Shown one piece after another: positions 13,782 to 64,000 of a stretch of 64,000 bases of DNA. A program made the translations under genes and the position numbers. The DNA comes from Macrostomum lignano (lineage: Eukaryota): NCBI GenBank assembly GCA_002269645.1, contig NIVC01002070.1, positions 62,001 to 126,000 of the forward strand. Direction: 5' to 3'. The notes under the pieces were generated by a model. The model was given only the letters and a program-made list of their open reading frames with translations. It did not search any database and was not told the DNA's origin. Numbering within the stretch: the stretch's first letter is position 1; every line of letters starts with the position of its first letter.

Positions 13782-16700
13782 TCACAGGTAAAACAGCCGA
13801 TCGCAGATAGCCTCAGCTGGCTCTGTGGCAATATTCTGGCCCACCATATAGACCAGTTTGTGCGCGTACTGGCACGGGGCGGGCACGCGGATTGAGCCGG
13901 CCCAGTTGTAGTACAGATGGCAGCTCCGGAATGTGAGCTGCTGAATCTCATCAACTGGAATGTCGCCAGCGCACTCGACCACGATGTAATGAGTTGGCGT
14001 GACCGTGCCCTGGGTTACATGCTGAGGCACGAGAAAGAAGTCCATCATCTCGGGCCGTGTGATGGAGTGGTCGAGCACAGTGCCTGCGGGGCGAGTGGGA
14101 GAATAGAAGTGGCTTAGAGCGAACAGGGCAATATTTGGAGAATTTCTCTGGGCAATATTTGGAGAATTTCTCTGGATAATGTTTGGAGAATTTCTCTGGA
14201 TAATATTTGGAGAATTTCTGAAGGCAATATATGGAGAATTTTTCTGAATTTGGAGAATTTTTCAGGGCAGTATTTGGAGAATATCTCAGGTGCAATATTA
14301 GGAGAATTTCTTAGGGCAATATTTGGAGAATTTCTCTGGTTAATATTTGGAGAATTTTTCTGGATAATATTTGGAGAATTTCTCTGGTTAATATTTGGAG
14401 GATTTCTCTGGTTAATATTTGGAGGATTTCTCAGGGCAATATTTGGAGAATTTTAAATTCATCAGAGGTCAGCCATGCCGCAATTCTTAAAAAAACATTT
14501 TCTTTACAATTTAGGGCAACGTTTATAAAACAGTGACAAGCTAAGGTAGGCTTCAGGATGTTGCTATCAAAATAGTTGAAGTGCATCATCATACCTGGCG
14601 GCGGATTTGAAAAGTTGTTGCCCTGAAGCAGGAACAGGCGCTGGTTGATCCTCTTCTGGACAACCATAAACACCAGCTTGGGCCGGTAGCTCGGGTCGTA
14701 GCCTCGGATAGCGGCATATATAGCCTTGACTTCTTGCTGCTGCACTTCGCCGATCTGCTTATCGGAAACGCCGTCGCGAAAGACAAAGATGACGTTGGGC
14801 GGAGCGCCGACAGTCTGCATGTATTTTGCTATCTGGCTTTGCACAATAACACGCATCGAGTCCAGGATCTCCTGTCCATGGCGCTGGGTGGCAACTCGCG
14901 AGTACCAGCGAGTGCAGGCCTGGTCCACAGAGGCTACTATGCCAGTGTAGGACGTGGTGCGCGCTTTGTCGGCGTGGTAGACATCAATTCCGAGCATCTG
15001 TGAGAGCGAATGAGGATGGGAATTGGATTCCTTATAACTAGAAATAAGCGTCACATGGTGGATAGTGTCATTTGACTGCTAATGGCTTGGCTGTCCACAA
15101 TCTAGGTTTGGGTTGGGGTTAGAGTAAAGGTTCATGTTTAGGTTAGGGTTTGGAATTAGGTTAAGTTTAATTATACATGCGCAACACCCGGCCAATTCAG
15201 CTAGGTGGCGAGAGGTCTGGCCAAGGTTAGTCGCAGAAACGCCGACCCAAAGAGAACAGTAGTAATAATCAGATGACGAGGCATTTTGCCTTAATAATAC
15301 AGTTATAGTTACTCCCACCGTTTACTTAAAATTACGTTAGTTTCTTTCATAGGTGCAGTTTTGGTAAAAAAGTAAGTTGCACGGCTGGGTGGAATCTCTA
15401 AGTTGGGCATGTATGGTTTTAATACTAGAGTTAGGTTTAAGGTTAGAGATAGATTGGCAGTCTAATGTCATGGGCAGTTAATTGTCGTAGACCCGCTATA
15501 TAGATAGTATGCTGATTCTCAAGCATTTGGAAGTCCCATCGGCCCAAAGTTGAAACCCGCTATGTCCCATCGAATTATTCTACGCTTTTAAGCTCTTGAA
15601 TCGCGGAAAGTTTGCAGGGTGTGCAATAAAAATTAGCTAAATCTGCAGTAGGAATTTTGCTCACCATGAATCGATCGTAGGGAATTTCGATGCCCCACAG
15701 GGCGCCGCCAAGCTTGACGTTAATCTGAGCGGCAACGTTGACGGCCACGCTGCCCATCTTCTTGGGGTCGCCGATAGTCTTGGTCCACAGGCACTGGCTG
15801 GGGACCACCAGCTCGGTGCAGCACAGTCTCTTCACCATGTTATATCGTTCCTCGCGCTGAGAGGTGAACACGGCGCAGACCAGATTCAGGTCCGTGGTGA
15901 AGTGCTGCTTGATGGCCTGCTGGTACTGACCGGAGCTGTCATTCGGCAGGGCTACGGTGCTGGGCTGGGCAACTGTGATGCCCATGGCGCGGCATTTCTT
16001 CATCATGGTCTCGCAGAACGAGGCGATGGTCCGCTCCTCCCTGGCCGGATAGACCACCAGCCACTTCAGCAGCTTGCCGTCAATCAGCACCCGGTTGTCG
16101 GCCAGGGCCCGCTTGAACTCGCTGGTCTGGCCGACCGGCACGGGGGCGAATGGGCCGCGGCCTCCGCCTCCGAACAGCACCCGCTCGTTGACAAAGCGGC
16201 GGGCGGGCACCACCTCCGGCTCCTCCAGCAGGCGCAGGCCCCAGGCGTCCAGCAGCTGGCGACACTCCGGCCGGTTGTTGATGGTCTGGACGAATTTGCG
16301 CAGCTCCATCAGGCGGCGGTCCGGGGACAGCTGAATGGAGAAGGTTGGAGAATTTAAAGTACAAACGAATTCTGGTGCCGCAGGAGCCTTTCTCAACTCA
16401 GACTCAACTATCATGGGAACAAAACACAGCAATGCCACTAACCTTGGTGAACTTGGCCAGGTCGCGCATAAGGCGAAAGTCTCGCCGCATCGCATCGGTT
16501 AGGCCGGTGACGTAGCAAAGCTCGGGCACCAGACAGATCTGGCGCTGTTCTAGAGTTTTGCCGTCCTTGCCGCGGACAGGCTTGGACCGGCTAATTAGCA
16601 GAGGCTGCTGCGGATCCTGGATCTCAATGTTGTACGCTTGTCTATAATAATCTAGGAACGACATCTGTGTGCCATTCCGCTCAAACGTGTGCGTGCAGTC

Positions 16701-17876
16701 CATTGAAGTCTCTACCTGGTCAACGCGCATGATCTTATTATTGTAGCGGGTCACAACCGACGTGCCAACAATGGCGTCTGTCATGTTGGAGAGGCTCGTC
16801 CCGACAGACTGGAACAAGTCGTAGACAGTCTGAGAGCGCACTACTCGGTGGCTGGACTCGATCATGAGGCGGAGGCCGCCGTCAACGTGGCTCACGGAGG
16901 TGATGTAGCCAGGCCAGACCTGCAGGAAAAATATTAAATCAATTAAACAGGATTTTATAATAAATTAAAAAATTCTAAAACAACTCACCTCCATTTGGTG
17001 ACCAGGGACTCGTTCGCCAGCGTGCGGATTATAATAATGTCTACGGACTTCAATCAGGTCCATCCGAGCTTGAATAGAGCGAAAAATAATGTTGTAGACG
17101 CTGGGCAGGCTGGATAGGGTAGCCGTGCCAACTAGTTGCAACTGCACCGCAACTCTCATGTTGCCCGAGGCGGCCTGGTAAACGGCGCTCTCCCTGGGCA
17201 GAGGCCTGTTAGTGTACAAACTGTTCCCGGACGGAACTCGGCCAGGAATCTTCTGGAACTCCGGATCCTGGATAGACAGTACCAGCCTGTCCCGCTGCAT
17301 CCTGGAGTCGACACTGGGGTTGAAGGTGATGCTGTACTGATACACCATCGTGTCCGCTCCTTCAACGCGCAGAAAATTAGTCCCAACAGTGACTCGCTGG
17401 CCAGTCTTGCCAGTCTTGTCTTCCGGACCGACGCGTCCGATTTGAGGTCGCCGGGTCCGCTCAGGCCGAGCCGCGGCGGCCGCCGGATGCTGGGTAGGCG
17501 CGCCCTGAACGCTCATGCGGCTCATTGCCTCTGGCAGAGCGGCGGTCGCTGCTGCCGCGGCAGGGGGGACTCCGCCACGGCCAAAGCCGCGACCAAACGT
17601 GGAAGCGGCTGATGGAACGGCGCCGCCAGTAGCCGCCGAGTCTCCACTTGGCTGTGGAACGGCGCCCCGGCCGAATGCGGAGATGCCGCGTCCAAACGCA
17701 GGCGCAGCGGGTCCAGGCGTGGCAGCTGCCGACACGCCAGCTTCCTGAGGCGCTGCAGTAGACCTGGCCCGGCCTATAGAGGGCTGCTGGGCAGCAGCAC
17801 TAGGGTTAGAAGTGTCTGACTCCTTAGCCAGCCCGATAAGCAGGCCACGACCAAGCTGGCCGCGTCCAAAGCTCAT
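13782..17876 (-). CDS. piwi: PIWI-clade Argonaute, 911 aa; exons 17876-16989, 16919-16443, 16330-15665, 14997-14595, 14083-13782
   Basis: N-terminal GRG repeats; G..G....V.TNF; VWPGYITS; PAZ domain (VVTRYNNK, SFLDYY, QPLLIS, LVPELCYVTGLTD); MID domain (RYNMVK, PSQC, QINVKLGG); PIWI domain (GIDVYH, FRDGV, VVQKRIN.R, PGTVLD, YYNWAGSIRVPAPCQYAHKL); C-terminus DRLFYL*. All four introns are GT-AG with phases 0,0,0,1 giving one frame. The specific paralog is not assignable. Confidence 0.97.
14125..14455. repeat. About 22-bp tandem repeat in piwi intron 4, about 14 copies
   Basis: Unit approximately GCAATATTTGGAGAATTTCTCT. Confidence 0.9.
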
Positions 17877-24477: not shown

Positions 24478-27400
24478 ATGGCATTCCCGTTGGTACAATC
24501 GGAATTGCGGCCTGATCTTCAGCCTTCTTCGTCCTCTCTGGCGCGGCGGATTCTGCTGCTGATGCTGCTAGCGCTGACCTGGCCTCGGCAGGCTGCAGCA
24601 GCAGGCCTTCGGACGGGAGTGTATCCCGGGGACCTGCTTCTCGGCGGCCTGTTCCCGCTGCACTACGCCAACCTCTCCGCCGGGCCCAACAACCGGTGCG
24701 GCCGTCTCAATCCGTTCGAAGGCGTCCAGGCCGTGGAGGCGACGCTGTTCACCCTGGAGCAGCTGCGCCAGTCCCGATTGCTGGCTGGCGGCCTTCAGAT
24801 CGGCGCCCTCCTAGTCGACACCTGCCAGGATGTCGATGTGGCACTGACGCAGTCGCTTAACTTTACTAACGCGCTGGCGGCTGGAGCTCTGCGCCGCGGC
24901 CTCATCCGCTGCTCGGCCGGCGGCCGGCCTGAGTTCGTTGCCAGCGCCGGTGTCGGCGGCGGCGGCTTCGACGGCGTCATCGGGCTTCTCGGAGCCGCCG
25001 AGAGCGACGTCACGGTCGCCATTGCCGGATTTATGAAGCACTTCCGGGTGCCGCAGGTGAGTGCTGGCCTTTCTTCAACACTGAACGCACAACGATTCGT
25101 GTCACTCATTGAGTCTCATTTCGTGTCTAACACACTGTCTCACCCTGTGTCACTCATTGAGTCTCATTTCGTGTCTAACACACTGTCTCACCCTGTGTCA
25201 CTCATTGAGTCTCATTTCGTGTCTAACACACTGTCTCACCCTGTGTCACTCATTGAGTCTCATTGTGTGTCTAACAGTGTCTCACCCTGTGTCACTCATT
25301 GAGTCTCATTTCGTGTCTCAAAAGAAGAAGATTTACAGTAGCCGGGCTACTGAAGTTTTAAGAGTACTTTTGCGTGTCGGAGATCTGGGGCACTGGGGAG
25401 GGGGCAGTTCGGAAGCTTTGCCGCTCTGCTAATCGAACTGCCGAAATCTATATTTTTGAGCTGAGGTTATAAACTCTCGCCGGTGCAGTGCATTTCTAGC
25501 ACCGACTGCATGCATATTATTGAGCATTTCCGCATCCTTGATGAAAAGTATTCAAATTCAGGTGAGGAATCGATGCCCTCCCACAGCCAGTGCAGCCACC
25601 GCTGCTTTTACCTGTAATAGACTTTGGAACCGATCGATTCGGAACTTTTCATCAAGAAGAAAAGGAGAATCGAGAAATAAGTTGTTGATGGCACTTTACT
25701 CTCGTAAATACATTGGTTTTCCACTGAAATAACAAACTGGCAGTGGCTTCCGTGTCTTTGACGAATGCCGACTCCTTCACAAGCACCGATGCCTGCAGGC
25801 TGTTGACCTCCCGAGCACCGGTGCCTGCAGGCTGTTGACCTCCCCGAGCACCGGTGCCTGCAGGCTGTTGACCTCCCCTAGCACCGATGCCTGCAGGCTG
25901 TTGACTTCTCCAAAACACCGGTGTCTGGAAGATGTTGACCTCCCCAAAGCACCAGTGTCTGGAAGATGTTGACCTCCCCAAAGCACCAGTGCCTGGAAGA
26001 TGTTGACCTCCCCAAAGCACCAGTGTCTGGAAGATGTTGACCTCCCCAAAGCACCAGTGCCTGGAAGATGTTGACCTCCCCAAAGCACCAGTGTCTGGAA
26101 GATTTTGACCTCCCCAAAGCACCAGTGTCTGGAAGATGTTGACCTCCCCAAAGCACCAGTGTCTGGAAGATGTTGACCTCCAAAAAGCACCGGTGTCTGA
26201 AGATGTTGACCTCCCCAAAGCACCAGTGTCTGGAAGATGTTGACCTCCCCAAAGCACCAGTGTCTGGAAGATGTTGACCTCCCCAAAGCACCAGTGTCTG
26301 GAAGATGTTGACCTCCCCAAAGCACCTGTCTTGGCAGGCTATTGAGCCCCCAACAAAGCACCGGGGCCTGCAACCTTATCCAATCCAGCATAGTCTGTTC
26401 AGAAAGCCATTGACTGAAGCAATCGATAGACGCCATGACCGTCCGATAATGCAGTGCGATTGCAGCAACTGGAAATTACTGAGCTGTGGAAGGATTCGTA
26501 GATAAATAATAAATAAAAGTACAGGCCCTGTCCGGGAAATCAGGAGTCGGCTGGAAATAATGGGAAGAAAAGGGAACGCGAAAGATTGCGGGGGGAAACA
26601 GAAGCGAGAGTGAAGTCAGCAGCTGCTTCAAATATGCAAAAGCAGAAGACCTGCCTGAGCGCTGAGAGTAAACACGAGCGCTGAAAGAGCCTTCTGCTGC
26701 TACCCCACACAGGTCATTAATCTCCAATTCAAAATTCTCAGGCGTGCCGAGCACAGAGTAGGGGCAAGTTTGCCCTTCCATAACTGCCTCAATGTGAACT
26801 TTATTCGCTCAGCACTGTTCCTTTCAGATCAGCTACCTGTCAACATCTTCGATCCTGAGCTCCAAGGAGAAATATCCCTACTTTCTGCGCACCGTTCCGT
26901 CCGACTCCAACACGGTGCGAGGCATTGTTGATCTGCTCAGGTGAGTCACGTTTGACCTGCTCAGGTGAGTCATGGTTGACCTGCTCAGGTGAGTCACGGT
27001 TGACCTGCTCAGGTGAGTCATGGTTGACCTGCTCAGGTGAGTCACGGTTGACCTGCTCAGGCGAGTCATGGGTAGACCTGCTCAGGTGAGTCATGTTTGA
27101 CCTGGTCAGGTGAGTCATGGTTAACCTGCTCAGGTGAGTCGTGGTTGACCTGCTCAGGTGAGTCACGTTTGACCTGCTCAGGTGAGTCATGTTTGACCTG
27201 CTCAGGTGAGTCATGTTTGACCTGGTCAGGTGAGTCATGGTTGACCTGCTCAGGTGAGTCATGTTTGACCTGCTCAGGTGAGTCGTGGTTGACCTGCTCA
27301 GGTGAGTCATGTTTGACCTGCTCAGGTGAGTCATGGTTGACCTGCTCAGGTGAGTCACGGTTGACCTGCTCAGGTGAGTCATGGTTGACCTGCTCAGGTG

Positions 27401-53055: not shown

Positions 53056-56000
53056 ATGACCCGAAAAAAAAACAAAAAGGACGCCAAGCCTAAGCCTAAG
53101 GTAAAACCTAAAAAAACTGCGACGCAAAAAGCCACTGCAAAATCGACGAAGGCCGCATCGCCTGGTGAAAACCGACAGTCTGCTCGCAAAACCATCGACA
53201 CCGAGTCCAGAAAAGTGAGTTTCGTTTGATGATCTCAAAATAGCTAATTGCAAGGCCTATCTAACCTACAGACACAACTGAAGCAGCTCTCTCAGTCTGT
53301 TTGGGGCTTTGGCTCACAGAGCTGTCTTGAAAGTTTAGTGCAGGAATGCTTACGTTTCTTGGAATGCAATCAGAACAGATTCTTAGAAAGCGAGCTGGTC
53401 CACCATGAGATCAGAATGTCTGCACTGTGTAAATGAATGGTCTCTAGGCATTCCGACTCAGATTATCGCCTAGTAGTGCTGTAGAGAAGGTGGTCCACCT
53501 AACCTACAGACACAACTGAAGCAGCTCTCTCAGTCTGAGGGTCACACGGATACACTGCAGCGGTTTTGAATTTAAGCTTCCGACTTTGACTTGTCTTTTT
53601 ATTCTCTAACTTCCTAGGAGCCTGAGGTCGAATTTCGTTCTCCTGAGCTCGACCAGTCTGACGCTTCGAAAAAGTTGAAATCGCGCTCTACGTCTGCATC
53701 ACGCCTTGATGAAGGCGCTCAGTCGCACAACGCTACCGCGGATGCAGGCGCTACTCCAGCCTCGAAGAAGGCCGCATCGCCAGGTGAAAATCGTCGGTCT
53801 ACTGGCAAATCCGTCGACACCGAGTCCAGAAAAGTGAGTTTCGCTTGATGATCTCAAAGTAGCTAGCTGCAACTCAATTGCTGTAGAGAAGCTGGTCCAC
53901 CTAACCTACAGACACAACTGAAGCAGCTCTCTCAGTCTGTTTGGGGCTTTGAATCTTGGAAGGTGGTCCACCTAACCTACAGACACATCTGAAGCAGCTT
54001 TCTCAGTCTGTTTGGGGCTTTGACTCTTATAAGGTGGTCCACCTAACCTACAGACACAACTGAAGCAGCTTTCTCAGTCTGTTTGGGGCCTTGGCTCTCA
54101 GAGCTGTCTTGAAAGTTTAGTGCGGGAATGTTTCCGTTTCTTGGAATGCAATCAGAACAGATTCTTAGAAAGCGAGCTGGTCCACCATGAGATCAGAATG
54201 TCTGCACTGTGTAAATGAATGGTCTCTAGACATTCCGACTCAGATTATCGCCTAGTAGTGCTGTAGAGAAGGTGGTCCACCTAACCTACAAACTCAACTG
54301 GAGCAGCTCTCTCAGTCTGTTTGAGGGTCACACGTAGGGATGTCGACCCCGGGGAGTGCTCCCCGGGGCCCCGGGGAGCTTGTCGGGGAATATTCCCCGG
54401 GGAATTGAACCGGGGACCCCGGGGAGAAAAATGCATTTTTAACCTAATTTTTGCCATTAAAATAAGAAAATAATTCACAGAGAGCTGATTGAAACTCTGT
54501 CTATGCTTTTCTTACCGCATAACTGCTTATCTCAATGTAAAATTTCAAACGCAACACACGTTTGAATGTTTTTTCACTACGAGTCCTTCAATCAAGCAAA
54601 TTTCACCTAAAAACCCGTCAGGAAAAAGAAGCTTTACTGACTACTGTGTTGGTCTGCGTTGACGGCTTGACGGAATTTGACGCAGGCACAGCGCTGCGTC
54701 CTGCGGACGCATGGGGGTGTCATACAATAACAAAATGCTCCCTATTAGACAAGGACAATGTCTGCTAGAAATAAAAATTTTGATTTTAAAAACAGTCTCA
54801 TTCATTAATTATCCTCCCACGAGCGTAGCTGCTGAGCATGCATTTTCCGCCTCCACACCACAGTCTGGACTCCTTCTGACAAAGGTGCACGCACGATTTG
54901 ATGATGCCACGTTGTCAAATACAGTTTTAAATAAACACAAGCTCCCCGGGGTCGACATCCCTACTACAACCAAGGGATATAGGCATTTCTTAGGAGCCAT
55001 TTAAATTTTAAAGTGATCTTATGCGAATTTTAATGTTAAAAGCTTCATGCTGTAACTAACTAATTTAGTAGGATTGCATTGTAATCAGTTATTCATTAAT
55101 TTTTCGCTATTTTTACAAACCATCCCACGTTGTCTTGACTCTTGATTTGCCATCTACTGTTATAACTGAGCCTGAAGACTTGTCTATACAGAGGACAGTG
55201 TTTTGAATCTCTGGCTAAACTGTCTCTCCTCTCTGCGCCTCTCCACTCGCGGGGTACAGAGAAGGCTATTAAAAAGTTATTCCAAAACACTGTACATTCG
55301 CTATGTACATTAAGCCCAATCGCCTGACCCTTCGTCTGGGGGGTCTGGGCTGGTGGAATGAGTGAGCGGCACAAACAACAGAAAAAGCAGACAAACTTCA
55401 CATGCTTACAGTTTCTGTCCTGATTGAGATACAGAGTTGAGACTTTACATTTAGATAGAGAATGAGTCAATAAAGAATTGCGTCAAATTTGAAGTCAATC
55501 GCTTCACGTGGAGCAAGCTTATGACAGCCGAAAGTTAGTCATTTTAAACCTATTTACACTCCTTTGCCCAGATCGGGAAAGAGAGGCAGGCGGGCGGAGG
55601 TTGGGGTGGTTGCCTCGCTGAAAAAACAGTTAATTTTAAAGTGCACAGCGCCTTTCAGGATTAACTTTGAGACTTGAATTTTACACGGTTGAAAGGATCG
55701 GTAGAAGTGGAGCGGCGCTATGGAGGATTTAGTAAAAAATCGCGCATTTTGAGCAGTTTTTGCACTTTTAGGTAGGAAGACTTGAGTTTAGGAAATTTTA
55801 AGGTAGCCTAAGACATTCTCCGTAGTAAATTTAGGGCGGGTGCAAAAGTTATCGTAATTTGGTTGAGCGGTTTGGGACTTGGGAGTCCATAGCAAAGTAA
55901 TTTGTACACAGACACACACGCAGACAGAGTTTTCATTTTTATAGGTAGAGATTGTTTAGTTTTTACCCTTGCGCCTTGAACATGTAGTCTAAAGCTAAAA

Positions 56001-59000
56001 TCAAAGTTTAAAATGCCATTTAAGATCTAAGCCAAAGTTATTCGCCGTTTTTAACTTATTTTTAATTTTCCCCGGGGTCCCCGGGGAATGACAGTAAATT
56101 CCCCGGGTCCCCGATAAGAATATTCCCCGGGGAATCGACATCCCTAGTCACACGGATACACGGCAGCGGTTTTGAATTTAAGCTTCCGACGTTGACTTGT
56201 CTTTTTATTCTCTAACATCCTAGGAGCCTGAGTTCGAATTTCATTCTCCTGAGCTCGACCAGTCTGACGCTTCGAAAAAGTCGAAATCGCGCTCTGCGTC
56301 TGCATCACGCCTTGATGAAGGCTCTCAGTTGCACAACGCTACCGCGGATGCAGGCGCTACTCCAGCCTCGAAGAAGGCCGCATCGCCTGGTGAAAATCGT
56401 CGGTCTACTCGCAAATACGTCGACACCGAGTCCAGAAAAGTGAGTTTCGCTTGATGATCTCAAAGTAGCTAGCTGCAACTCAATTGCTGTAGAGAAGCTC
56501 TTAAAAGGTGGTCCACCTAACCTACAGACACAACTGAAGCAGCTCTCTCAGTCTGTTTGGGGCTTTGACTCTTATAAGGTGGTCCACCTAACCTACAGAC
56601 ACAACTGAAGCAGCTTTCTCAGTCTGTTTGGGGCTTTGACTCTTGGAAGGTGGTCCACCTAACCTACAGACACAACTGAAGCAGCTCTCTCAGTCTGTTT
56701 GGGGCTTTGACTTTTATAAGGTGGTCCACCTAACCTACAGACACAACTGATGCAGCTCTCTCAGTCTGTTTGGGGCCTTGGCTGTCAGAGCTGTCTTGAA
56801 AGTTTAGTGCGGGAATGTTTCCGTTTCTTGGAATGCAATCAGAACAGATTCTTAGAAAGCGAGCTGGTCCACCATGAGATCAGAATGTCTGCACTGTGTA
56901 AATGAATGGTCTCTAGGCATTCCGACTCAGATTATCGCCTAGTAGTGCTGTAGAGAAGGTGGTCCACCTAACCTACAGACACAACTGAAGCAGCTCTCTC
57001 AGTCTGTTTGAGGGTCACACGGATACACTGCAGCGGTTTTGAATTTAAGCTTCCGACGTTGACTTGTCTTTTTATTCTCTAACTTCCTAGGAGCCCGAGG
57101 TCGAATTTCGTTCTCCTGAGCTCGACCAGTCTGAGGCTTCGAAAAAGTTGAAATCGCGCTCTGCGTCTGCATCACGCCTTGATGAAGGCGCTCAGTCGCA
57201 CAACGCTACCGCGGATGCAAGCGCTACTCCAGCCTCGAAGAAGGCCGCATCGCCTGGTGAAAATCGTCGGTCTACTGGCAAATCCGTCGACACCGAGTCC
57301 AGAAAAGTGAGTTTCGCTTGATGATCTCAAAGTAGCTAGCTGCAACTCAATTGCTGTAGAGAAGCTGGTCCACCTAACCTACAGACACAACTGAAGCAGC
57401 TCTCTCAGTCTGTTTGGGGCTTTGAATCTTGGAAGGTGGTCCACCTAACCTACAGACACATCTGAAGCAGCTTTCTCAGTCTGTTTGGGGCTTTGACTCT
57501 TGGAAGGTGGTCCACCTAACCTACAGACACAACTGAAGCAGCTCTCTCAGTCTGTTTGGGGCTTTGACTTTTATAAGGTGGTCCACCTAACCTACAGACA
57601 CAACTGAAGCAGCTCTCTCAGTCTGTTTGGGGCTTTGACTTTTATAAGGTGGTCCACCTAACCTACAGACACAACTGAAGCAGCTCTCTCAGTCTGTTTG
57701 GGGCTTTGACTCTTAAAAAGTGGTCCACCTAACCTACAGACACAACTGAAGCAGCTCTCTCAGTCTGTTTGGGGCTTTGACTCTTGGAAGGTGGTCCACC
57801 TAACCTACAGACACAACTGAAGCAGCTCTCTCAGTCTGTTTGGGGCCTTGGCTCTCAGAGCTGTCTTGAAAGTTTAGTGCGGGAATGTTTCCGTTTCTTG
57901 GAATGCAATCAGAACAGATTCTTAGAAAGCGAGCTGGTCCACCATGAGATCAGAATGTCTGCACTGTGTAAATGAATGGTCTCTAGGCATTCCGACTCAG
58001 ATTATCGCCTAGTAGTGCTGTAGAGAAGGTGGTCCACCTAACCTACAGACACAACTGAAGCAGCTCTCTCAGTCTGTTTGAGGGTCACACGGATACACTG
58101 CAGCGGTTTTGAATTTAAGCTTCCGACGTTGACTTGTCTTTTTATTCTCTAACTTCCTAGGAGCCCGAGGTCGAATTTCGTTCTCCTGAGCTCGACCAGT
58201 CTGAGGCTTCGAAAAAGTTGAAATCGCGCTCTGCGTCTGCATCACGCCTTGATGAAGGCGCTCAGTCGCACAACGCTACCGCGGATGCAAGCGCTACTCC
58301 AGCCTCGAAGAAGGCCGCATCGCCTGGTGAAAATCGTCGGTCTACTGGCAAATCCGTCGACACCGAGTCCAGAAAAGTGAGTTTCGCTTGATGATCTCAA
58401 AGTAGCTAGCTGCAACTCAATTGCTGTAGAGAAGCTGGTCCACCTAACCTACAGACACAACTGAAGCAGCTCTCTCAGTCTGTTTGGGGCTTTGAATCTT
58501 GGAAGGTGGTCCACCTAACCTACAGACACATCTGAAGCAGCTTTCTCAGTCTGTTTGGGGCTTTGACTCTTGGAAGGTGGTCCACCTAACCTACAGATAC
58601 AACTGAAGCAGCTCTCTCAGTCTGTTTGGGGCTTTGACTTTTATAAGGTGGTCCACCTAACCTACAGACACAACTGAAGCAGCTCTCTCAGTCTGTTTGG
58701 GGCTTTGACTCTTATAAGGTGTCCACCTAACCTACAGACACAACTGAAGCAGCTCTCTCAGTCTGTTTGGGGCTTTGACTCTTAGAAGGTGGTCCACCTA
58801 ACCTACAGTCAAAACTTATGTACTGTTTAGGCGTTTCCGTAATGGAGTAATATGTGAGAAATTTTTTTTTATTTTAGTTTCTACAGGGCTGTTTGGTCGA
58901 GCAGTTTACATTGGATTCTCTTCGAGGGAAGCGAGTTTTTTTTCTGTACGGCGAAAGTCAAAAGCGACAAAAGAAGCTGGAATCTGCCGTCGTCTATTAT

Positions 59001-62000
59001 GGCGGAAGCGTTGCTTCGTTTTTTTCAAATGAGGTGTGTAGTTTTTGCAATGCATTCGTTGTTTTTGTTTGTTGCTTGTTAATAGGGCAGATTAGAGACG
59101 TTGATAGATTTTTTGTAGCTATGGGCTCGTATTTTTTGCTTTTCCAGGTTGATTTAATCATCGCTGACGATTCCGCTGTCTCCATTGAAGCTAAACAATC
59201 TTTTTCGGAGTTTTCTAGGGGTTTCACCATGCAGCAGAGAGCCGTTACGCAAACTTCGAGTTCGCAATGCAGAATTGTCAAAACATTCGAAGATATTTTG
59301 ACGAAAGCTCGCTTGCTGCAAATACCTGTCTACACTCCGGCAATATTTCGAGATCGAATTCGCGATCAAGTTTCTCAACACGAGCTGTGCCAGAAAACTA
59401 TTTCTTCAGGGAGGTTTGCCGAAGAAGATCGGAATTTGACCCCACCGGCCGTTGTTGTTACGGATGCCCAGCATTTGCTGAGACCAATCTTCAAAGATAA
59501 CATTGATGTCGTCGACATTTTTGCAAACCCAAGGGCTAATAATAACGATGAAAAAAATCGTCAAAAGCCTGACGGCAAAGAAAAACGGAAAGGTCGGTGT
59601 GAAAACTGTCGCGAAGCCTACGACGACTTTAATCAGCACATAACATTAAGCCAAAAGCACCAAGATTTCGTTTCGAATAAAAAATTTTTTACTGAAATCG
59701 ACCAAATCATTTCAACTCTTCCGACGCTAGACAGCGCCCTAAATGAAGCGACTCAAAAGGCTACCGCTCCTATGACACATCATGACACGAAAAAACCGGA
59801 TTCGAAAGCACTACCTAACATATTTCAGCAAAATGACGGTGATAGACGGCAAGCCGCATCGCTTGGCGAAAATCGTCAGTCTGCTCGCAAATACGTCGAC
59901 ACCGAGTCCAAAAAAGTGAGTTTCGTTTAATGATCTCAAAATAGCTAGCTGCATGCAACTCAATTGCTGTAGAGAAGTTCTTAAAAGGTGGTCCACCTAA
60001 CCTACAGACACAACTGAAGCAGCTCTCTCAGTCTGTTTGGGGCTTTGACTTTTATAAGGTGGTCCACCTAACCTACAGACACAACTGAAGCAGCTCTCTC
60101 AGTCTGTTTGGGGCTTTGACTCTTAAAAGGTGGTCCACCTAACCTACAGGCACAACTAAAGCAGCTCTCTCAGTCTGTTTGAGGGTCACACGGATACACG
60201 GCAGCGGTTTTGAATTTAAGCTTCCGACTTTGACTTGTCTTTTTATTCTCTAATTTCCTAGGAGCCTGAGGTCGAATTTCGTTCACGCCAAATCGAACGC
60301 ACTGGTGCCTCAAAAAGAGGGCGGAAATCGCGAAGCCGTTCGCGCTCTGCATCACGCCTTGATGAAGGCGCTCAGTCGCACAACGCTACCGCGGATGCAG
60401 GCGCTACTCCAGCCTCGAAGAAGGCCGCATCGCCTGGTGAAAATCGTCGGTCTACTGGCAAATCCGTCGACACCGAGTCCAGAAAAGTGAGTTTCGCTTG
60501 ATGATCTCAAAGTAGCTAGCTGCAACTCAATTGCTGTAGAGAAGCTGGTCCACCTAACCTACAGACACAACTGAAGCAGCTCTCTCAGTCTGTTTGGGGC
60601 TTTGACTCTTGGAAGGTGGTCCACCTAACCTACAGACACAACTGAAGCAGCTCTCTCAGTCTGTTTGGGGCTTTAACTCTTAAAAGGTGGTCAACCTAAC
60701 CTACAGACACAACTGAAGCAGCTCTCTCAGTCTGTTTGGGGCTTTGACTTTTATAAGGTGGTCCACCTAACCTACAGACACAACTGAAGCAGCTCTCTCA
60801 GTCTGTTTGGGGCTTTGACTTTTATAAGGTGGTCCACCTAACCTACAGACACAACTGAAGCAGCTCTCTCAGTCTGTTTGGGGCTTTGACTTTTATAAGG
60901 TGTCCACCTAACCTACAGACACAACTGAAGCAGCTCTCTCAGTCTGTTTGGGGCTTTGACTCTTGGAAGGTGGTCCACCTAACCTACAGACACAACTGAA
61001 GCAGCTCTCTCAGTCTGTTTGGGGCCTTGGCTGTCAGAGCTGTCTTGAAAGTTTAGTGCGGGAATGTTTCCGTTTCTTGGAATGCAATCAGAACAGATTC
61101 TTAGAAAGCGAGCTGGTCCACCATGAGATCAGAATGTCTGCACTGTGTAAATGAATGGTCTCTAGGCATTCCGACTCAGATTATCGCCTAGTAGTGCTGT
61201 AGAGAAGGTGGTCCACCTAACCTACAGACACAACTGAAGCAGCTCTCTCAGTCTGTTTGAGGGTCACACGGATACACGGCAGCGGTTTTGAATTTAAGCT
61301 TCCGACTTTGACTTGTCTTTTTATTCTCTAACTTCCTAGGAGCCTGAGGTCGAATTTCGTTCCCGCCAAATCGAACGCACTGGTGCCTCAAAAAGAGGGC
61401 GGAAATCGCGAAGCCGTTCGCGCTCTGCATCACGCCTTGATGAAGGCGCTCAGTCGCACAACGCTACCGCGGATGCAGGCGCTACTCCAGCCTCGAAGAA
61501 GGCCGCATCGCCTGGTGAAAATCGTCGGTCAACTGGCAAATCCGTCGACACCGAGTCCAGAAAAGTGAGTTTCGCTTGATGATCTCAAAGTAGCTAGCTG
61601 CAACTCAATTGCTGTAGAGAAGCTGGTCCACCTAACCTACAGACATCAACTGAAGCAGCTCTCTCAGTCTGTTTGGGGCTTTGACTTTTATAAGGTGGTC
61701 CACCTAACCTACAGAAACAACTGAAGCAGCTCTCTCAGTCTGTTTGGGGCTTTGACTTTTATAAGGTGGTCTACCTAACCTACAGACACAACTGAAGCAG
61801 CTTTCTCAGTCTGTTTGGGGCTTTGACTTTTATAAGGTGGTCCACCTAACCTACAGACACAACTGAAGCAGCTTTCTCAGTCTGTTTGGGGCTTTGACTT
61901 TTATAAGGTGGTCCACCTAACCTACAGACACAACTGAAGCAGCTCTCTCAGTCTGTTTGAGGGTCACACGGATACACGGCAGCGGTTTTGAATTTAAGCT

Positions 62001-63344
62001 TCCGACTTTGACTTGTCTTTTTATTCTCTAACTTCCTAGGAGCCTGAGGTCGAATTTCGTTCCCGCCAAATCGAACGCACTGGTGCCTCAAAAAGAGGGC
62101 GGAAATCGCGAAGCCGTTCGCGCTCTGCATCACGCCTTGATGAAGGCGCTCAGTCGCACAACGCTACCGCGGATGCAGGCGCTACTCCAGCCTCGAAGAA
62201 GGCCGCATCGCCTGGTGAAAATCGTCGGTCTACTGGCAAATCCGTGGACACCGAGTCCAGAAAAGTGAGTTTCGCTTGATGATCTCAAAGTAGCTAGCTG
62301 CAACTCAATTGCTGTAGAGAAGCTGGTCCACCTAACCTACAGACACAACTGAAGCAGCTCTCTCAGTCTGTTTGGGGCTTTGACTTTTATAAGGTGGTCC
62401 ACCTAACCTACAGACACAACTGAAGCAGCTCTCTCAGTCTGTTTGGGGCTTTGACTTTTATAAGGTGGTCCACCTAACCTACAGACACAACTGAAGCAGC
62501 TCTCTCAGTCTGTTTGGGGCTTTGGCTCTCAGAGCTGTCTTGAAAGTTTAGTGCGGGAATGTTTCCGTTTCTTGGAATGCAATCAGAACAGATTCTTAGA
62601 AAGCGAGCTGGTCCACCATGAGATCAGAACGTCTGCACTGTGTAAATGAATGGTCTCAAGGCATTCCGACTCAGATTATCGCCTAGTAGTGCTGTAGAGA
62701 AGGTGGTCCACCTAACCTACAGACACAACTGAAGCAGCTCTCTCAGTCTGTTTGGGGCTTTGACTCTTAAAAGGTGGTCCACCTAACCTACAGACATCAA
62801 CTGAAGCAGCTCTCTCAGTCTGTTTGGGGCTTTGACTCTTAAAAGGTGGTCAACCTAACCTACAGACACAACTGAAGCAGCTCTCTCAGTCTGTTTGGGG
62901 CTTTGACTTTTATAAGGTGGTCCACCTAACCTACAGACACAACTGAAGCAGCTCTCTCAGTCTGTTTGGGGCTTTGACTTTTATAAGGTGGTCCACCTAA
63001 CCTACAGACACAACTGAAGCAGCTCTCTCAGTCTGTTTGAGGGTCACACGGATACACGGCAGCGGTTTTGAATTTAAGCTTCCGACTTTGACTTGTCTTT
63101 TTATTCTCTAACTTCCTAGGAGCCTGAGGTCGAATTTCGTTCCCGCCAAATCGAACGCACTGGTGCCTCAAAAAGAGGGCGGAAATCGCGAAGCCGTTCG
63201 CGCTCTGCATCACGCCTTGATGAAGGCGCTCAGTCGCACAACGCTACCGCGGATGCAGGCGCTACTCCAGCCTCGAAGAAGGCCGCATCGCCTGGTGAAA
63301 ATCGTCGGTCTACTGGCAAATCCGTCGACACCGAGTCCAGAAAA
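53056..63344 (+). CDS. Predicted repeat-exon/DBF4 chain, 3'-incomplete. Exons 53056-53214 (H1-tail-like); 53618-53833, 56224-56439, 57091-57306, 58161-58376 (72-aa module); 58887-59033, 59148-59915 (DBF4 core); 60262-60486, 61340-61564, 62040-62264, 63120-63344 (75-aa module)
   Basis: Every module exon has a polypyrimidine tract plus CCTAG|GAG acceptor and an AAA|GTGAGT donor, is a multiple of 3, is stop-free and is phase 0-0. The DBF4 exons are also phase 0 at their outer ends. That all exons form one transcript is inference. Confidence 0.6.
54335..56146 (+). mobile_element. Non-autonomous hAT transposon, 1812 bp, with a transposase dimerisation-domain remnant
   Basis: TIRs TAGGGATGTCGA / TCGACATCCCTA. 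8-bp TSD GTCACACG at 54327-54334 and 56147-56154. The empty site GAGGGTCACACGGATAC is present in sister units. Subterminal CCCCGGGG motifs. The peptide PPTSVAAEHAFS..SGLLLTK...R.DD resembles the hAT C-terminal motif. Confidence 0.92.
58887..59915 (+). CDS. DBF4: DBF4/ASK/Chiffon (CDC7 kinase activator) core; intron 59034-59147
   Basis: Motif N (LRGKRVFFLY..KKLESAVVYYGGSVASFFSNE|VDLII, SRG, DIL.KA), motif M (LTPPAVVVTDAQHLLRPIFK) and motif C zinc finger (KGRCENCREAYDDFNQHI..SQKHQDF) appear in the canonical order. Confidence 0.85.
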
Positions 63345-64000
63345 GTGAGTTTCGCTTGATGATCTCAAAGTAGCTAGCTGCAACTCAATTGCTGTAGAGA
63401 AGCTGGTCCACCTAACCTACAGACACAACTGAAGCAGCTCTCTCAGTCTGTTTGGGGCTTTGACTCTTAAAAGGTGGTCCACCTAACCTACAGACACAAC
63501 TGAAGCAGCTCTCTCAGTCTGTTTGGGGCTTTAACTCTTAAAAGGTGGTCAACCTAACCTACAGACACAACTAAAGCAGCTCTCTCAGTCTGTTTGGGGC
63601 TTTGGCTCTCAGAGCTGTCTTGAAAGTTTAGTGCGGGAATGTTTCCGTTTCTTGGAATGCAATCAGAACAGATTCTTAGAAAGCGAGCTGGTCCACCATG
63701 AGATCAGAACGTCTGCACTGTGTAAATGAATGGTCTCAAGGCATTCCGACTCAGATTATCGCCTAGTAGTGCTGTAGAGAAGGTGGTCCACCTAACCTAC
63801 AGACACAACTGAAGCAGCTCTCTCAGTCTGTTTGGGGCTTTGACTCTTGGAAGGTGGTCCACCTAACCTACAGACACAACTGAAGCAGCTCTCTCAGTCT
63901 GTTTGGGGCTTTGGCTCTCAGAGCTGTCTTGAAAGTTTAGTGCGGGAATGTTTCCGTTTCTTGGAATGCAATCAGAACAGATTCTTAGAAAGCGAGCTGG

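Follow-up and report, generated by a model that had tools for sequence, protein, structure and literature searches.

DBF4 orthologues carry the conserved motifs N, M and C followed by a long and poorly conserved extension, as in the C-terminal tail of vertebrate DBF4/ASK and in insect Chiffon. Genes built from iterated units of exon plus intron are known from other proteins. The SmPoMuc genes of Schistosoma mansoni contain genomic repeats of ~1 kb, each comprising one exon with its flanking introns and with simple repeats in between; the intron parts are >94% identical and the units evolve in concert, while differences between exon types are kept between clusters and the repeats in transcripts vary in number (PMC2576457). 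Spider Flag silk also consists of iterated exon-intron units, with introns that are more homogenised than the exons (Hayashi and Lewis 2000, as cited in PMC2576457). Here we describe a 64,000-nt stretch of the flatworm Macrostomum lignano (GenBank assembly GCA_002269645.1, contig NIVC01002070.1, positions 62,001 to 126,000; hereafter the window), in which positions 53056–64000 contain the core of DBF4, the regulatory subunit and activator of Cdc7 kinase, amid tandem units of exon plus intron. This array is a new case of a known architecture. The original prediction, made from the sequence of the window, held that no exon-array form was known, which is true of DBF4 as far as we could find but not of the architecture, as SmPoMuc and Flag silk demonstrate. 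Taken as a whole, the reading we favour, namely a DBF4 gene within a recently amplified array, with a message begun by a spliced leader and a C-terminal tail made of repeated exons, has in our judgement about even chances of being correct.

Like SmPoMuc, the array is a flatworm system of exon-intron units in which introns are homogenised and exon types are kept apart. Unlike SmPoMuc, a secreted mucin with 27-bp exons and a one-sided array, it has exons of 216–225 bp, belongs to a nuclear cell-cycle regulator and lies on both sides of a conserved core. The contrast between introns and exons resembles that in Flag silk: the unique intron segments differ by 0–3.7% over the whole array, and the two exon types described below, A and B, by 12.5–14.8%. 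Flag silk is, however, a structural protein without a conserved catalytic-partner domain in the middle of its array. The position of the extension after the conserved motifs is shared with vertebrate DBF4/ASK and Chiffon, in which it is encoded by a single large exon or by unique sequence rather than by tandem, near-identical exons with homogenised introns.

When proteins were searched with the translated core, two UniProt models of M. lignano, a free-living flatworm, were returned at 100% identity, and a cluster look-up added a third. Of these models (P0001, P0002 and P0003), P0001 and P0003 are UniProt ‘DBF4-type domain-containing protein’ entries, with identities to the core of 100% and 99%. 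Regular-expression searches and translation placed on the + strand, in this order, an ATG exon (exon0), four type A exons, a two-exon DBF4 core and at least four type B exons. Exon0 (53056–53214, 53 codons) starts with MTRKKNKKDAKPKPK and shares homology with the module tail over its last 24 codons and its donor. The type A exons, each of 216 nt and 72 aa, are located at 53618–53833, 56224–56439 (the most diverged copy), 57091–57306 and 58161–58376 (identical to the third). The type B exons, each of 225 nt and 75 aa, are located at 60262–60486, 61340–61564, 62040–62264 and 63120–63344. The four upstream and at least four downstream copies of the original prediction were thus recovered with coordinates, as was its stop-free, phase 0–0 exon with strong splice sites in each unit, which is found in all eight modules. 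All eight share one acceptor, tctctaac(t/a)tcctag, and one donor, gtgagtttcg, and all are free of stops in frame 1, which is closed exactly by the acceptor TAG on one side and on the other by a stop that follows the donor at 12 nt. Each exon has phase 0–0 and a length divisible by 3 nt. Exon0 and the last DBF4 exon, which ends at 59915, share the tail AAS.GENR..DTES.K followed directly by GTGAGTTTCG, so that the DBF4 exon does end in the module motif as had been noted. Strings diagnostic of type are TCTCCTGAGCTCGACCAGTCTGA for A, CGCCAAATCGAACGCACTGGTGCC for B and AAGCCTAAGCCTAAGGTAAAACCT for exon0. Within the window, no array elements were found before 53215 or on the other strand, and the array runs past the window end at 64000.

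The array introns (53215–64000, + strand) share one plan, consisting of a 58-nt segment I5, two to seven copies of a 71-bp minisatellite, zero to two 181-nt ‘B’ segments with further 71-bp copies, and an 81-nt segment I3 with a pyrimidine tract and ctaac. A period of roughly 1 kb had been proposed; the repeated unit is real, but its length is not fixed, varying from 700 to 1080 bp with the number of 71-bp repeats, and one unit reaches 2606 bp because its intron holds a 1812-bp transposon. The locus thus comprises eight tandem + strand units in the same segment order, with symmetric exons and homogenised introns. Introns are 96–100% identical across units, and I5 is identical in 8/9 copies. That the introns are more homogenised than the exons while the exon types remain separate points to units evolving in concert through unequal exchange and conversion. 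We propose that the array changes through unequal crossing-over and gene conversion, with the 71-bp minisatellite of every intron as the seed; because the exons are phase 0–0 and multiples of 3 nt, the gain or loss of a unit never breaks the reading frame. The most diverged tail copies are those at the array edges, namely the tail of exon0 and the tail of core exon 2, each with the start of the following intron, as expected for edges.

When an A unit is compared with a B unit, 27 of the 34 differences are concentrated in 60 alignment columns inside the exon. This patch reads SPELDQSEASKK-LKSRSASASR versus SRQIERTGASKRGRKSRSRSRSASR, with pS 0.56 and pN 0.31 in one alignment; inspection by eye also permits a reading as three in-frame indels (+3, +12, −6) and a 24-nt stretch of substituted sequence. 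The net difference of 9 nt between A and B is the sole exon length difference, in agreement with the earlier statement that indels lie in introns or preserve the frame. Each 71-bp repeat, as well as 58786–58808, carries CCTAACCTACAG, in which a branch-point-like CTAAC precedes a CAG matching the trans-splice acceptor motif. The array gives way to the unique DBF4 block exactly behind the CAG of CCTAACCTACAG. The possibility that the 71-bp units are themselves exons was rejected, as the implied intron is only 20 nt long.

The identification of the middle part as DBF4, also made in the original prediction, was confirmed. Core exon 1 (58887–59033, + strand, 49 codons) encodes a candidate BRCT-like motif N, and core exon 2 (59148–59915, + strand, 256 codons) encodes a motif-M-like segment, VVVTDAQHLLRPIF, and a zf-DBF domain at ~59583–59720, with homology to the module tail from ~59850. 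The 114-nt intron between them (59034–59147, GTGTGT...CAG) is spliced out in P0001 and P0003. The zf-DBF match to Pfam PF07535 covers profile positions 1–45 of 45 (E 2.5e-14, 53.5 bits against a cut-off of 24.8) and supplies motif C, a CCHH DBF-type zinc finger. In a phmmer search against PDB, the core matched, through its zinc finger, yeast Dbf4 (7pt6_9, E 3.1e-05) and human DBF4 (4f99_B, E 3.4e-04). Matches to the N-terminal part are fainter, comprising Pfam BRCT at residues 12–63 with 20.2 bits, below the cut-off of 21.3 (E 7e-4), and a sub-threshold alignment to yeast Dbf4 residues 144–183. A HMMER search of a representative library with the 49-aa first core exon retrieved P0001, P0002 and one weak BRCT-like match. 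The segment VVVTDAQHLLRPIF lies 38 residues N-terminal of the zinc finger and resembles the V-x-V-x-D-x5-R-P pattern of human DBF4; sequence searching did not confirm this, as phmmer against PDB gave chance matches to XLF only. The AlphaFold2 single-sequence model of P0003 was unusable, with a predicted local distance difference test score (pLDDT) of 37.7. Binding and activation of Cdc7 kinase would be expected of a Dbf4-type regulatory subunit.

Several further features of the core were observed. The intron 59034–59147 is itself in frame and stop-free, so that its retention would add 38 residues to the BRCT-like domain without truncation. Model P0002 removes a 232-nt GT..AG intron (59597–59828) within core exon 2, by which the zinc finger is lost and the frame is shifted. 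The sole AATAAA between 56200 and 64000, at 59676–59681, falls within DBF4 coding sequence directly behind the zinc finger and belongs to an A6T6 run, at which P0001 has KKNF and the window KKFF.

The downstream type B modules are tied to the core by annotated gene models. Junction 59915 to 60262, which the original prediction had singled out as a check, is present in three independent models, namely P0001, P0003 and, in a shifted frame, P0002. These models stem from at least two loci of the older ML2 assembly, and each joins the core to one B module; P0003 matches the window exactly. The joined sequence is ...GAGTCCAAAAAA followed by GAGCCTGAGGTC, with GAGTCCAAAAAAGAGCCTGAGGTCG as its junction string. 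Among the four B modules in the window (B5–B8) there are three private substitutions, all of them synonymous, against a chance expectation of ~27% (binomial p 0.019). When codon usage was scored with the Argonaute gene of the window and the DBF4 core as the training set, the B modules scored positive in frame 1 only. Neither AATAAA nor ATTAAA occurs downstream of 59916 within the window. The evidence that the downstream B modules are coding is fair, and the C-terminal half of the array model is likely on these grounds; the downstream units probably lengthen the C-terminal tail of DBF4. In the favoured reading, the donor at 59915 would be cis-spliced into a series of 75-aa type B exons, which would add a serine-rich, arginine/serine- and lysine-rich (RS/K-rich), probably disordered tail of variable length, with a predicted stop codon beyond the window.

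The modules could alternatively be pseudo-exons of a non-coding satellite, in which case DBF4 would read through the donor at 59916 (…DTESKKVSFV, ending at TAA 59928–59930) and be polyadenylated in the next intron. An uninterrupted frame does extend from 58878 to TAA 59928–59930 (listed as an open reading frame, ORF, at 58893–59930), and yeast Dbf4 ends right after motif C (residues 655–700 of 704). Frame 2 is, moreover, also open in 5/8 modules, which makes an open frame weak evidence by itself. We therefore rejected the open frame alone as proof of coding. The frame into which P0002 is shifted (+2) is open through all four B modules and closed in three of the four A modules. We regard this explanation as very unlikely, because three annotated models splice 59915 to 60262, the window offers no polyadenylation signal of either form downstream of the donor, the private changes in B are synonymous by three to none, and the splice sites are of consensus type and identical in 8/8 copies.

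The core has no start or stop codon of its own, and its last exon ends in a consensus donor at 59916. The unique DBF4 block, from 58809 to ~59849, is bounded on one side by a 71-bp repeat cut after position 23 and on the other by the start of the tail homology. Its two non-homologous junctions, one in a 71-bp repeat and one in a module exon, give it the appearance of having replaced part of a unit. These features would suit a 1.04-kb DBF4 fragment captured by an unrelated repeat-exon gene, with functional DBF4 elsewhere and the present copy a chimera or pseudogene. Such a capture is highly improbable in our view: the sole DBF4-like M. lignano proteins found are the three models from at least two loci, all of which run from core to module; module-only proteins were not found among the matches; and the core ORF is intact, its copies among the models differing by 1 residue in 305. 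That every DBF4 model found contains the module junction argues for a working DBF4 rather than a captured fragment. Exact look-ups found no record of the contigs encoding P0001, P0002 and P0003, nor of one for the ATG-initiated genomic ORF 59121–59930. As to the origin of the arrangement, either DBF4 was inserted into an existing array, or duplications whose breakpoints lay in the last DBF4 exon and the next exon gave rise to the array.

No in-frame cis ATG is available to the core, and the first methionine of the spliced core is residue 77, past motif N. Upstream of the core lies a unique 78-nt segment (58809–58886, + strand), which starts at a 71-bp repeat truncated right after CCTAACCTACAG, ends in the acceptor tttctacag and carries in-frame stops (a TAA, and a TAG at 58875–58877). 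P0001, P0002 and P0003 all begin at base 58887, the first base of core exon 1, even though they extend one module in the 3′ direction. M. lignano trans-splices ~30% of its genes and 85% of its neoblast genes, using a 35-nt leader, CGGTCTCTTACTGCGAAGACTCAATTTATTGCATG, that ends in ...TTGCATG, and its acceptors are enriched in the motif [T/C]TNCAG (PMC8629364). In the account given in PMC12582326, which cites Cheng et al. 2006, all reported flatworm leaders end in AUG, which is usable as a start codon. The acceptor at 58887 (CTACAG followed by GGC) is in phase 0 and fits [T/C]TNCAG. A leader AUG joined to this phase-0 acceptor would thus give AUG-GGC-UGU, i.e., M-GCLVEQF, with no need for an upstream module.

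Leader addition at 58887 would explain both the absent start codon and the boundaries of the models. In the favoured reading, the main mRNA would begin by trans-splicing at this site, with the terminal AUG of the leader as the start (M-GCLVEQF...), and would then pass through the two core exons with motifs N, M-like and C; the predicted joined sequence is ...TTATTGCATG followed by GGCTGTTTGGTC, with TTATTGCATGGGCTGTTTGGTCGAG as its junction string. The phase-0 acceptor and the lack of an upstream cis AUG are as in other flatworm mRNAs that use the 3′-terminal AUG of the leader, although leader use here is deduced from sequence and model boundaries. A search of the whole window against Rfam gave no family match, and the spliced-leader sequence is not in the window.

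Several considerations weigh against this favoured reading. The motif [T/C]TNCAG has 70 matches in 53–64 kb, most of them in the 71-bp repeat since every copy carries CCTAACCTACAG, and it therefore has little specificity. The strong cis donor at 58377, upstream of 58887, would compete with trans-splicing if transcription came from exon0. The common ends of the ML2 models might reflect collapsed transcript or contig breaks instead of mRNA ends. Every splice junction considered here is inferred or second-hand; of the repeated exons, the first B module alone is seen, in the UniProt models; and the substitution counts are very small. In the A modules, too, ORFs and splice sites are intact and the codon score is positive, although this is to be expected in copies only 2–5% diverged, whether used or not. 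Weighing these points, we lean modestly towards a main mRNA that starts at 58887 rather than a long form based on exon0.

The principal competitor is one long gene with a promoter upstream of 53056, in which exon0, the four A exons, the core and at least four B exons would all be cis-spliced to give a protein with disordered arrays at both ends. All junctions required are in phase 0 and create an open frame of 946 codons; the predicted join of A module and core is ...GAGTCCAGAAAA followed by GGCTGTTTGGTC, with GAGTCCAGAAAAGGCTGTTTGGTCGAG as its junction string. Exon0 has its ATG, an in-frame TAA 27 nt upstream and, as judged by eye only, TATA-like and CCAAT-like strings 100–215 nt upstream. 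The donor at 58377 has no cis acceptor other than 58887, the frame-1 codon score is positive for exon0 as well as for the A modules, and the exon patch distinguishing A from B differs by a net in-frame 9 nt while its flanks are homogenised. Nevertheless, no protein with exon0, an A module or the junction 58376 to 58887 was found in a database of 5.8 billion proteins, and no annotated model contains that junction, contrary to what the original prediction led one to expect. The search that combined exon0 and the A modules with core exon 1 matched only the same DBF4 models, through the core exon. A word-index search with the A and B modules returned nothing, not even P0001, probably owing to low-complexity words, and is uninformative.

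Substitution patterns and model boundaries also speak against the long gene. The three models start exactly at 58887. Changes among the A modules comprise 2 synonymous and 8–10 nonsynonymous, against 3:0 in B (Fisher p 0.02–0.035), and copy A2 by itself carries five private changes that are nonsynonymous and none that is synonymous. The A modules therefore appear to change as if neutral and are doubtful as coding sequence; the units are so young that ORFs and splice sites would persist without selection. The comparison of nonsynonymous and synonymous changes among units that had been proposed as a check spoke for the B modules, whose private changes are all synonymous, and not for the A modules. 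On this evidence, we judge the long gene unlikely, though a contender to be taken seriously. The upstream A units are probably skipped, and exon0 and the A exons are probably not part of the main DBF4 message; they may represent either a minor long isoform from a promoter near 52.9 kb or decaying copies. Of the proposed DBF4 with module arrays at both ends, the C-terminal half is thus likely and the N-terminal half doubtful.

The proposal of basic modules on both sides of DBF4 also held in part. Exon0 (net charge +15) and type B modules (+8, isoelectric point 11.1) are basic; type A modules are not, with a net charge of +1 and an isoelectric point of 8.4. Because ~25% of the residues in exon0 and the modules are serine or threonine and <10% are hydrophobic, the exon0, A and B sequences are probably disordered. 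No Pfam match was found for the modules. The B module contains KSRSRSRSASR and 11 overlapping RS/SR dipeptides per 75 aa, and the A module contains 5–6. As regards the chromatin tether or phospho-switch put forward in the original prediction, minimal [ST]P sites number two or three per module, and none is a full [ST]Px[KR] site with a basic residue at +3. Our guess is that the tail may serve in targeting to the nucleus or chromatin, or in regulation by phosphorylation. A LEDGF-binding motif in EPEVEF was considered and rejected, as its register does not fit the E-x-E-x-F pattern. It is also conceivable, if rather improbable, that arrays of near-identical symmetric exons, variable in copy number, form both DBF4 termini, the N-terminal one from acidic or neutral A modules and the C-terminal one from RS/K-rich B modules. 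The length and charge of the disordered tails would then be tuned by unequal crossing-over, by exon skipping and by whether a cis promoter is used or the leader is trans-spliced to any one of the phase-0 acceptors.

DBF4-Cdc7 fires replication origins and should thus be needed for the proliferation of neoblasts and germline in M. lignano, a transgenic stem-cell model. If its tail is an exon array, the disordered region of an essential regulator could change in length in one recombination step, and tail length may also differ between homeologous copies of the polyploid M. lignano genome. The locus is also a clean candidate for a case in which splicing has to supply the start codon of a gene. 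It also holds a lesson for annotation, in that satellite-looking sequence in a repeat-rich genome can contain coding exons; repeat masking and short-read transcript assembly leave such a gene without start or stop, as in the three UniProt models. No papers linking Macrostomum and DBF4 were found, and there was no DBF4 entry among those listed in the eLife 2016 supplements.

The element that lengthens the 2606-bp unit is a non-autonomous DNA transposon (54335–56146) in the intron between the first two A exons, inserted exactly where I3 begins. It has perfect terminal inverted repeats of 22–23 nt (TAGGGATGTCGACCCCGGGGAG), with a third, internal copy of the repeat at 54942–54964, and subterminal repeats rich in CCCCGGGG. 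No long ORF was found within it. It is flanked by an 8-bp target duplication, GTCACACG, a length typical of hAT elements.

More than half of the M. lignano genome is repetitive, and simple and tandem repeats make up 15% (PMC5730564). Tandem Repeats Finder reported 67 rows for the window, representing dozens of distinct tandem arrays, and the window thus fits this repeat-rich genome. Between 25000 and 52000, ~27 kb consist almost entirely of different tandem arrays in succession, with periods of 4 to 95 bp and each 0.2–1.7 kb long, which could belong to the introns of a receptor gene or to a satellite-rich region. An ORF at 24478–25302 on the + strand encodes an ANF_receptor ligand-binding domain (E 1.6e-08). 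On the minus strand, long ORFs at 14431–17876 contain PAZ (E 2.8e-29) and Piwi (E 6.3e-32 and 6.6e-11) domains. They represent an Argonaute/Piwi-family gene with few or short introns, located in a GC-rich island (57% GC) with AT-rich flanks.

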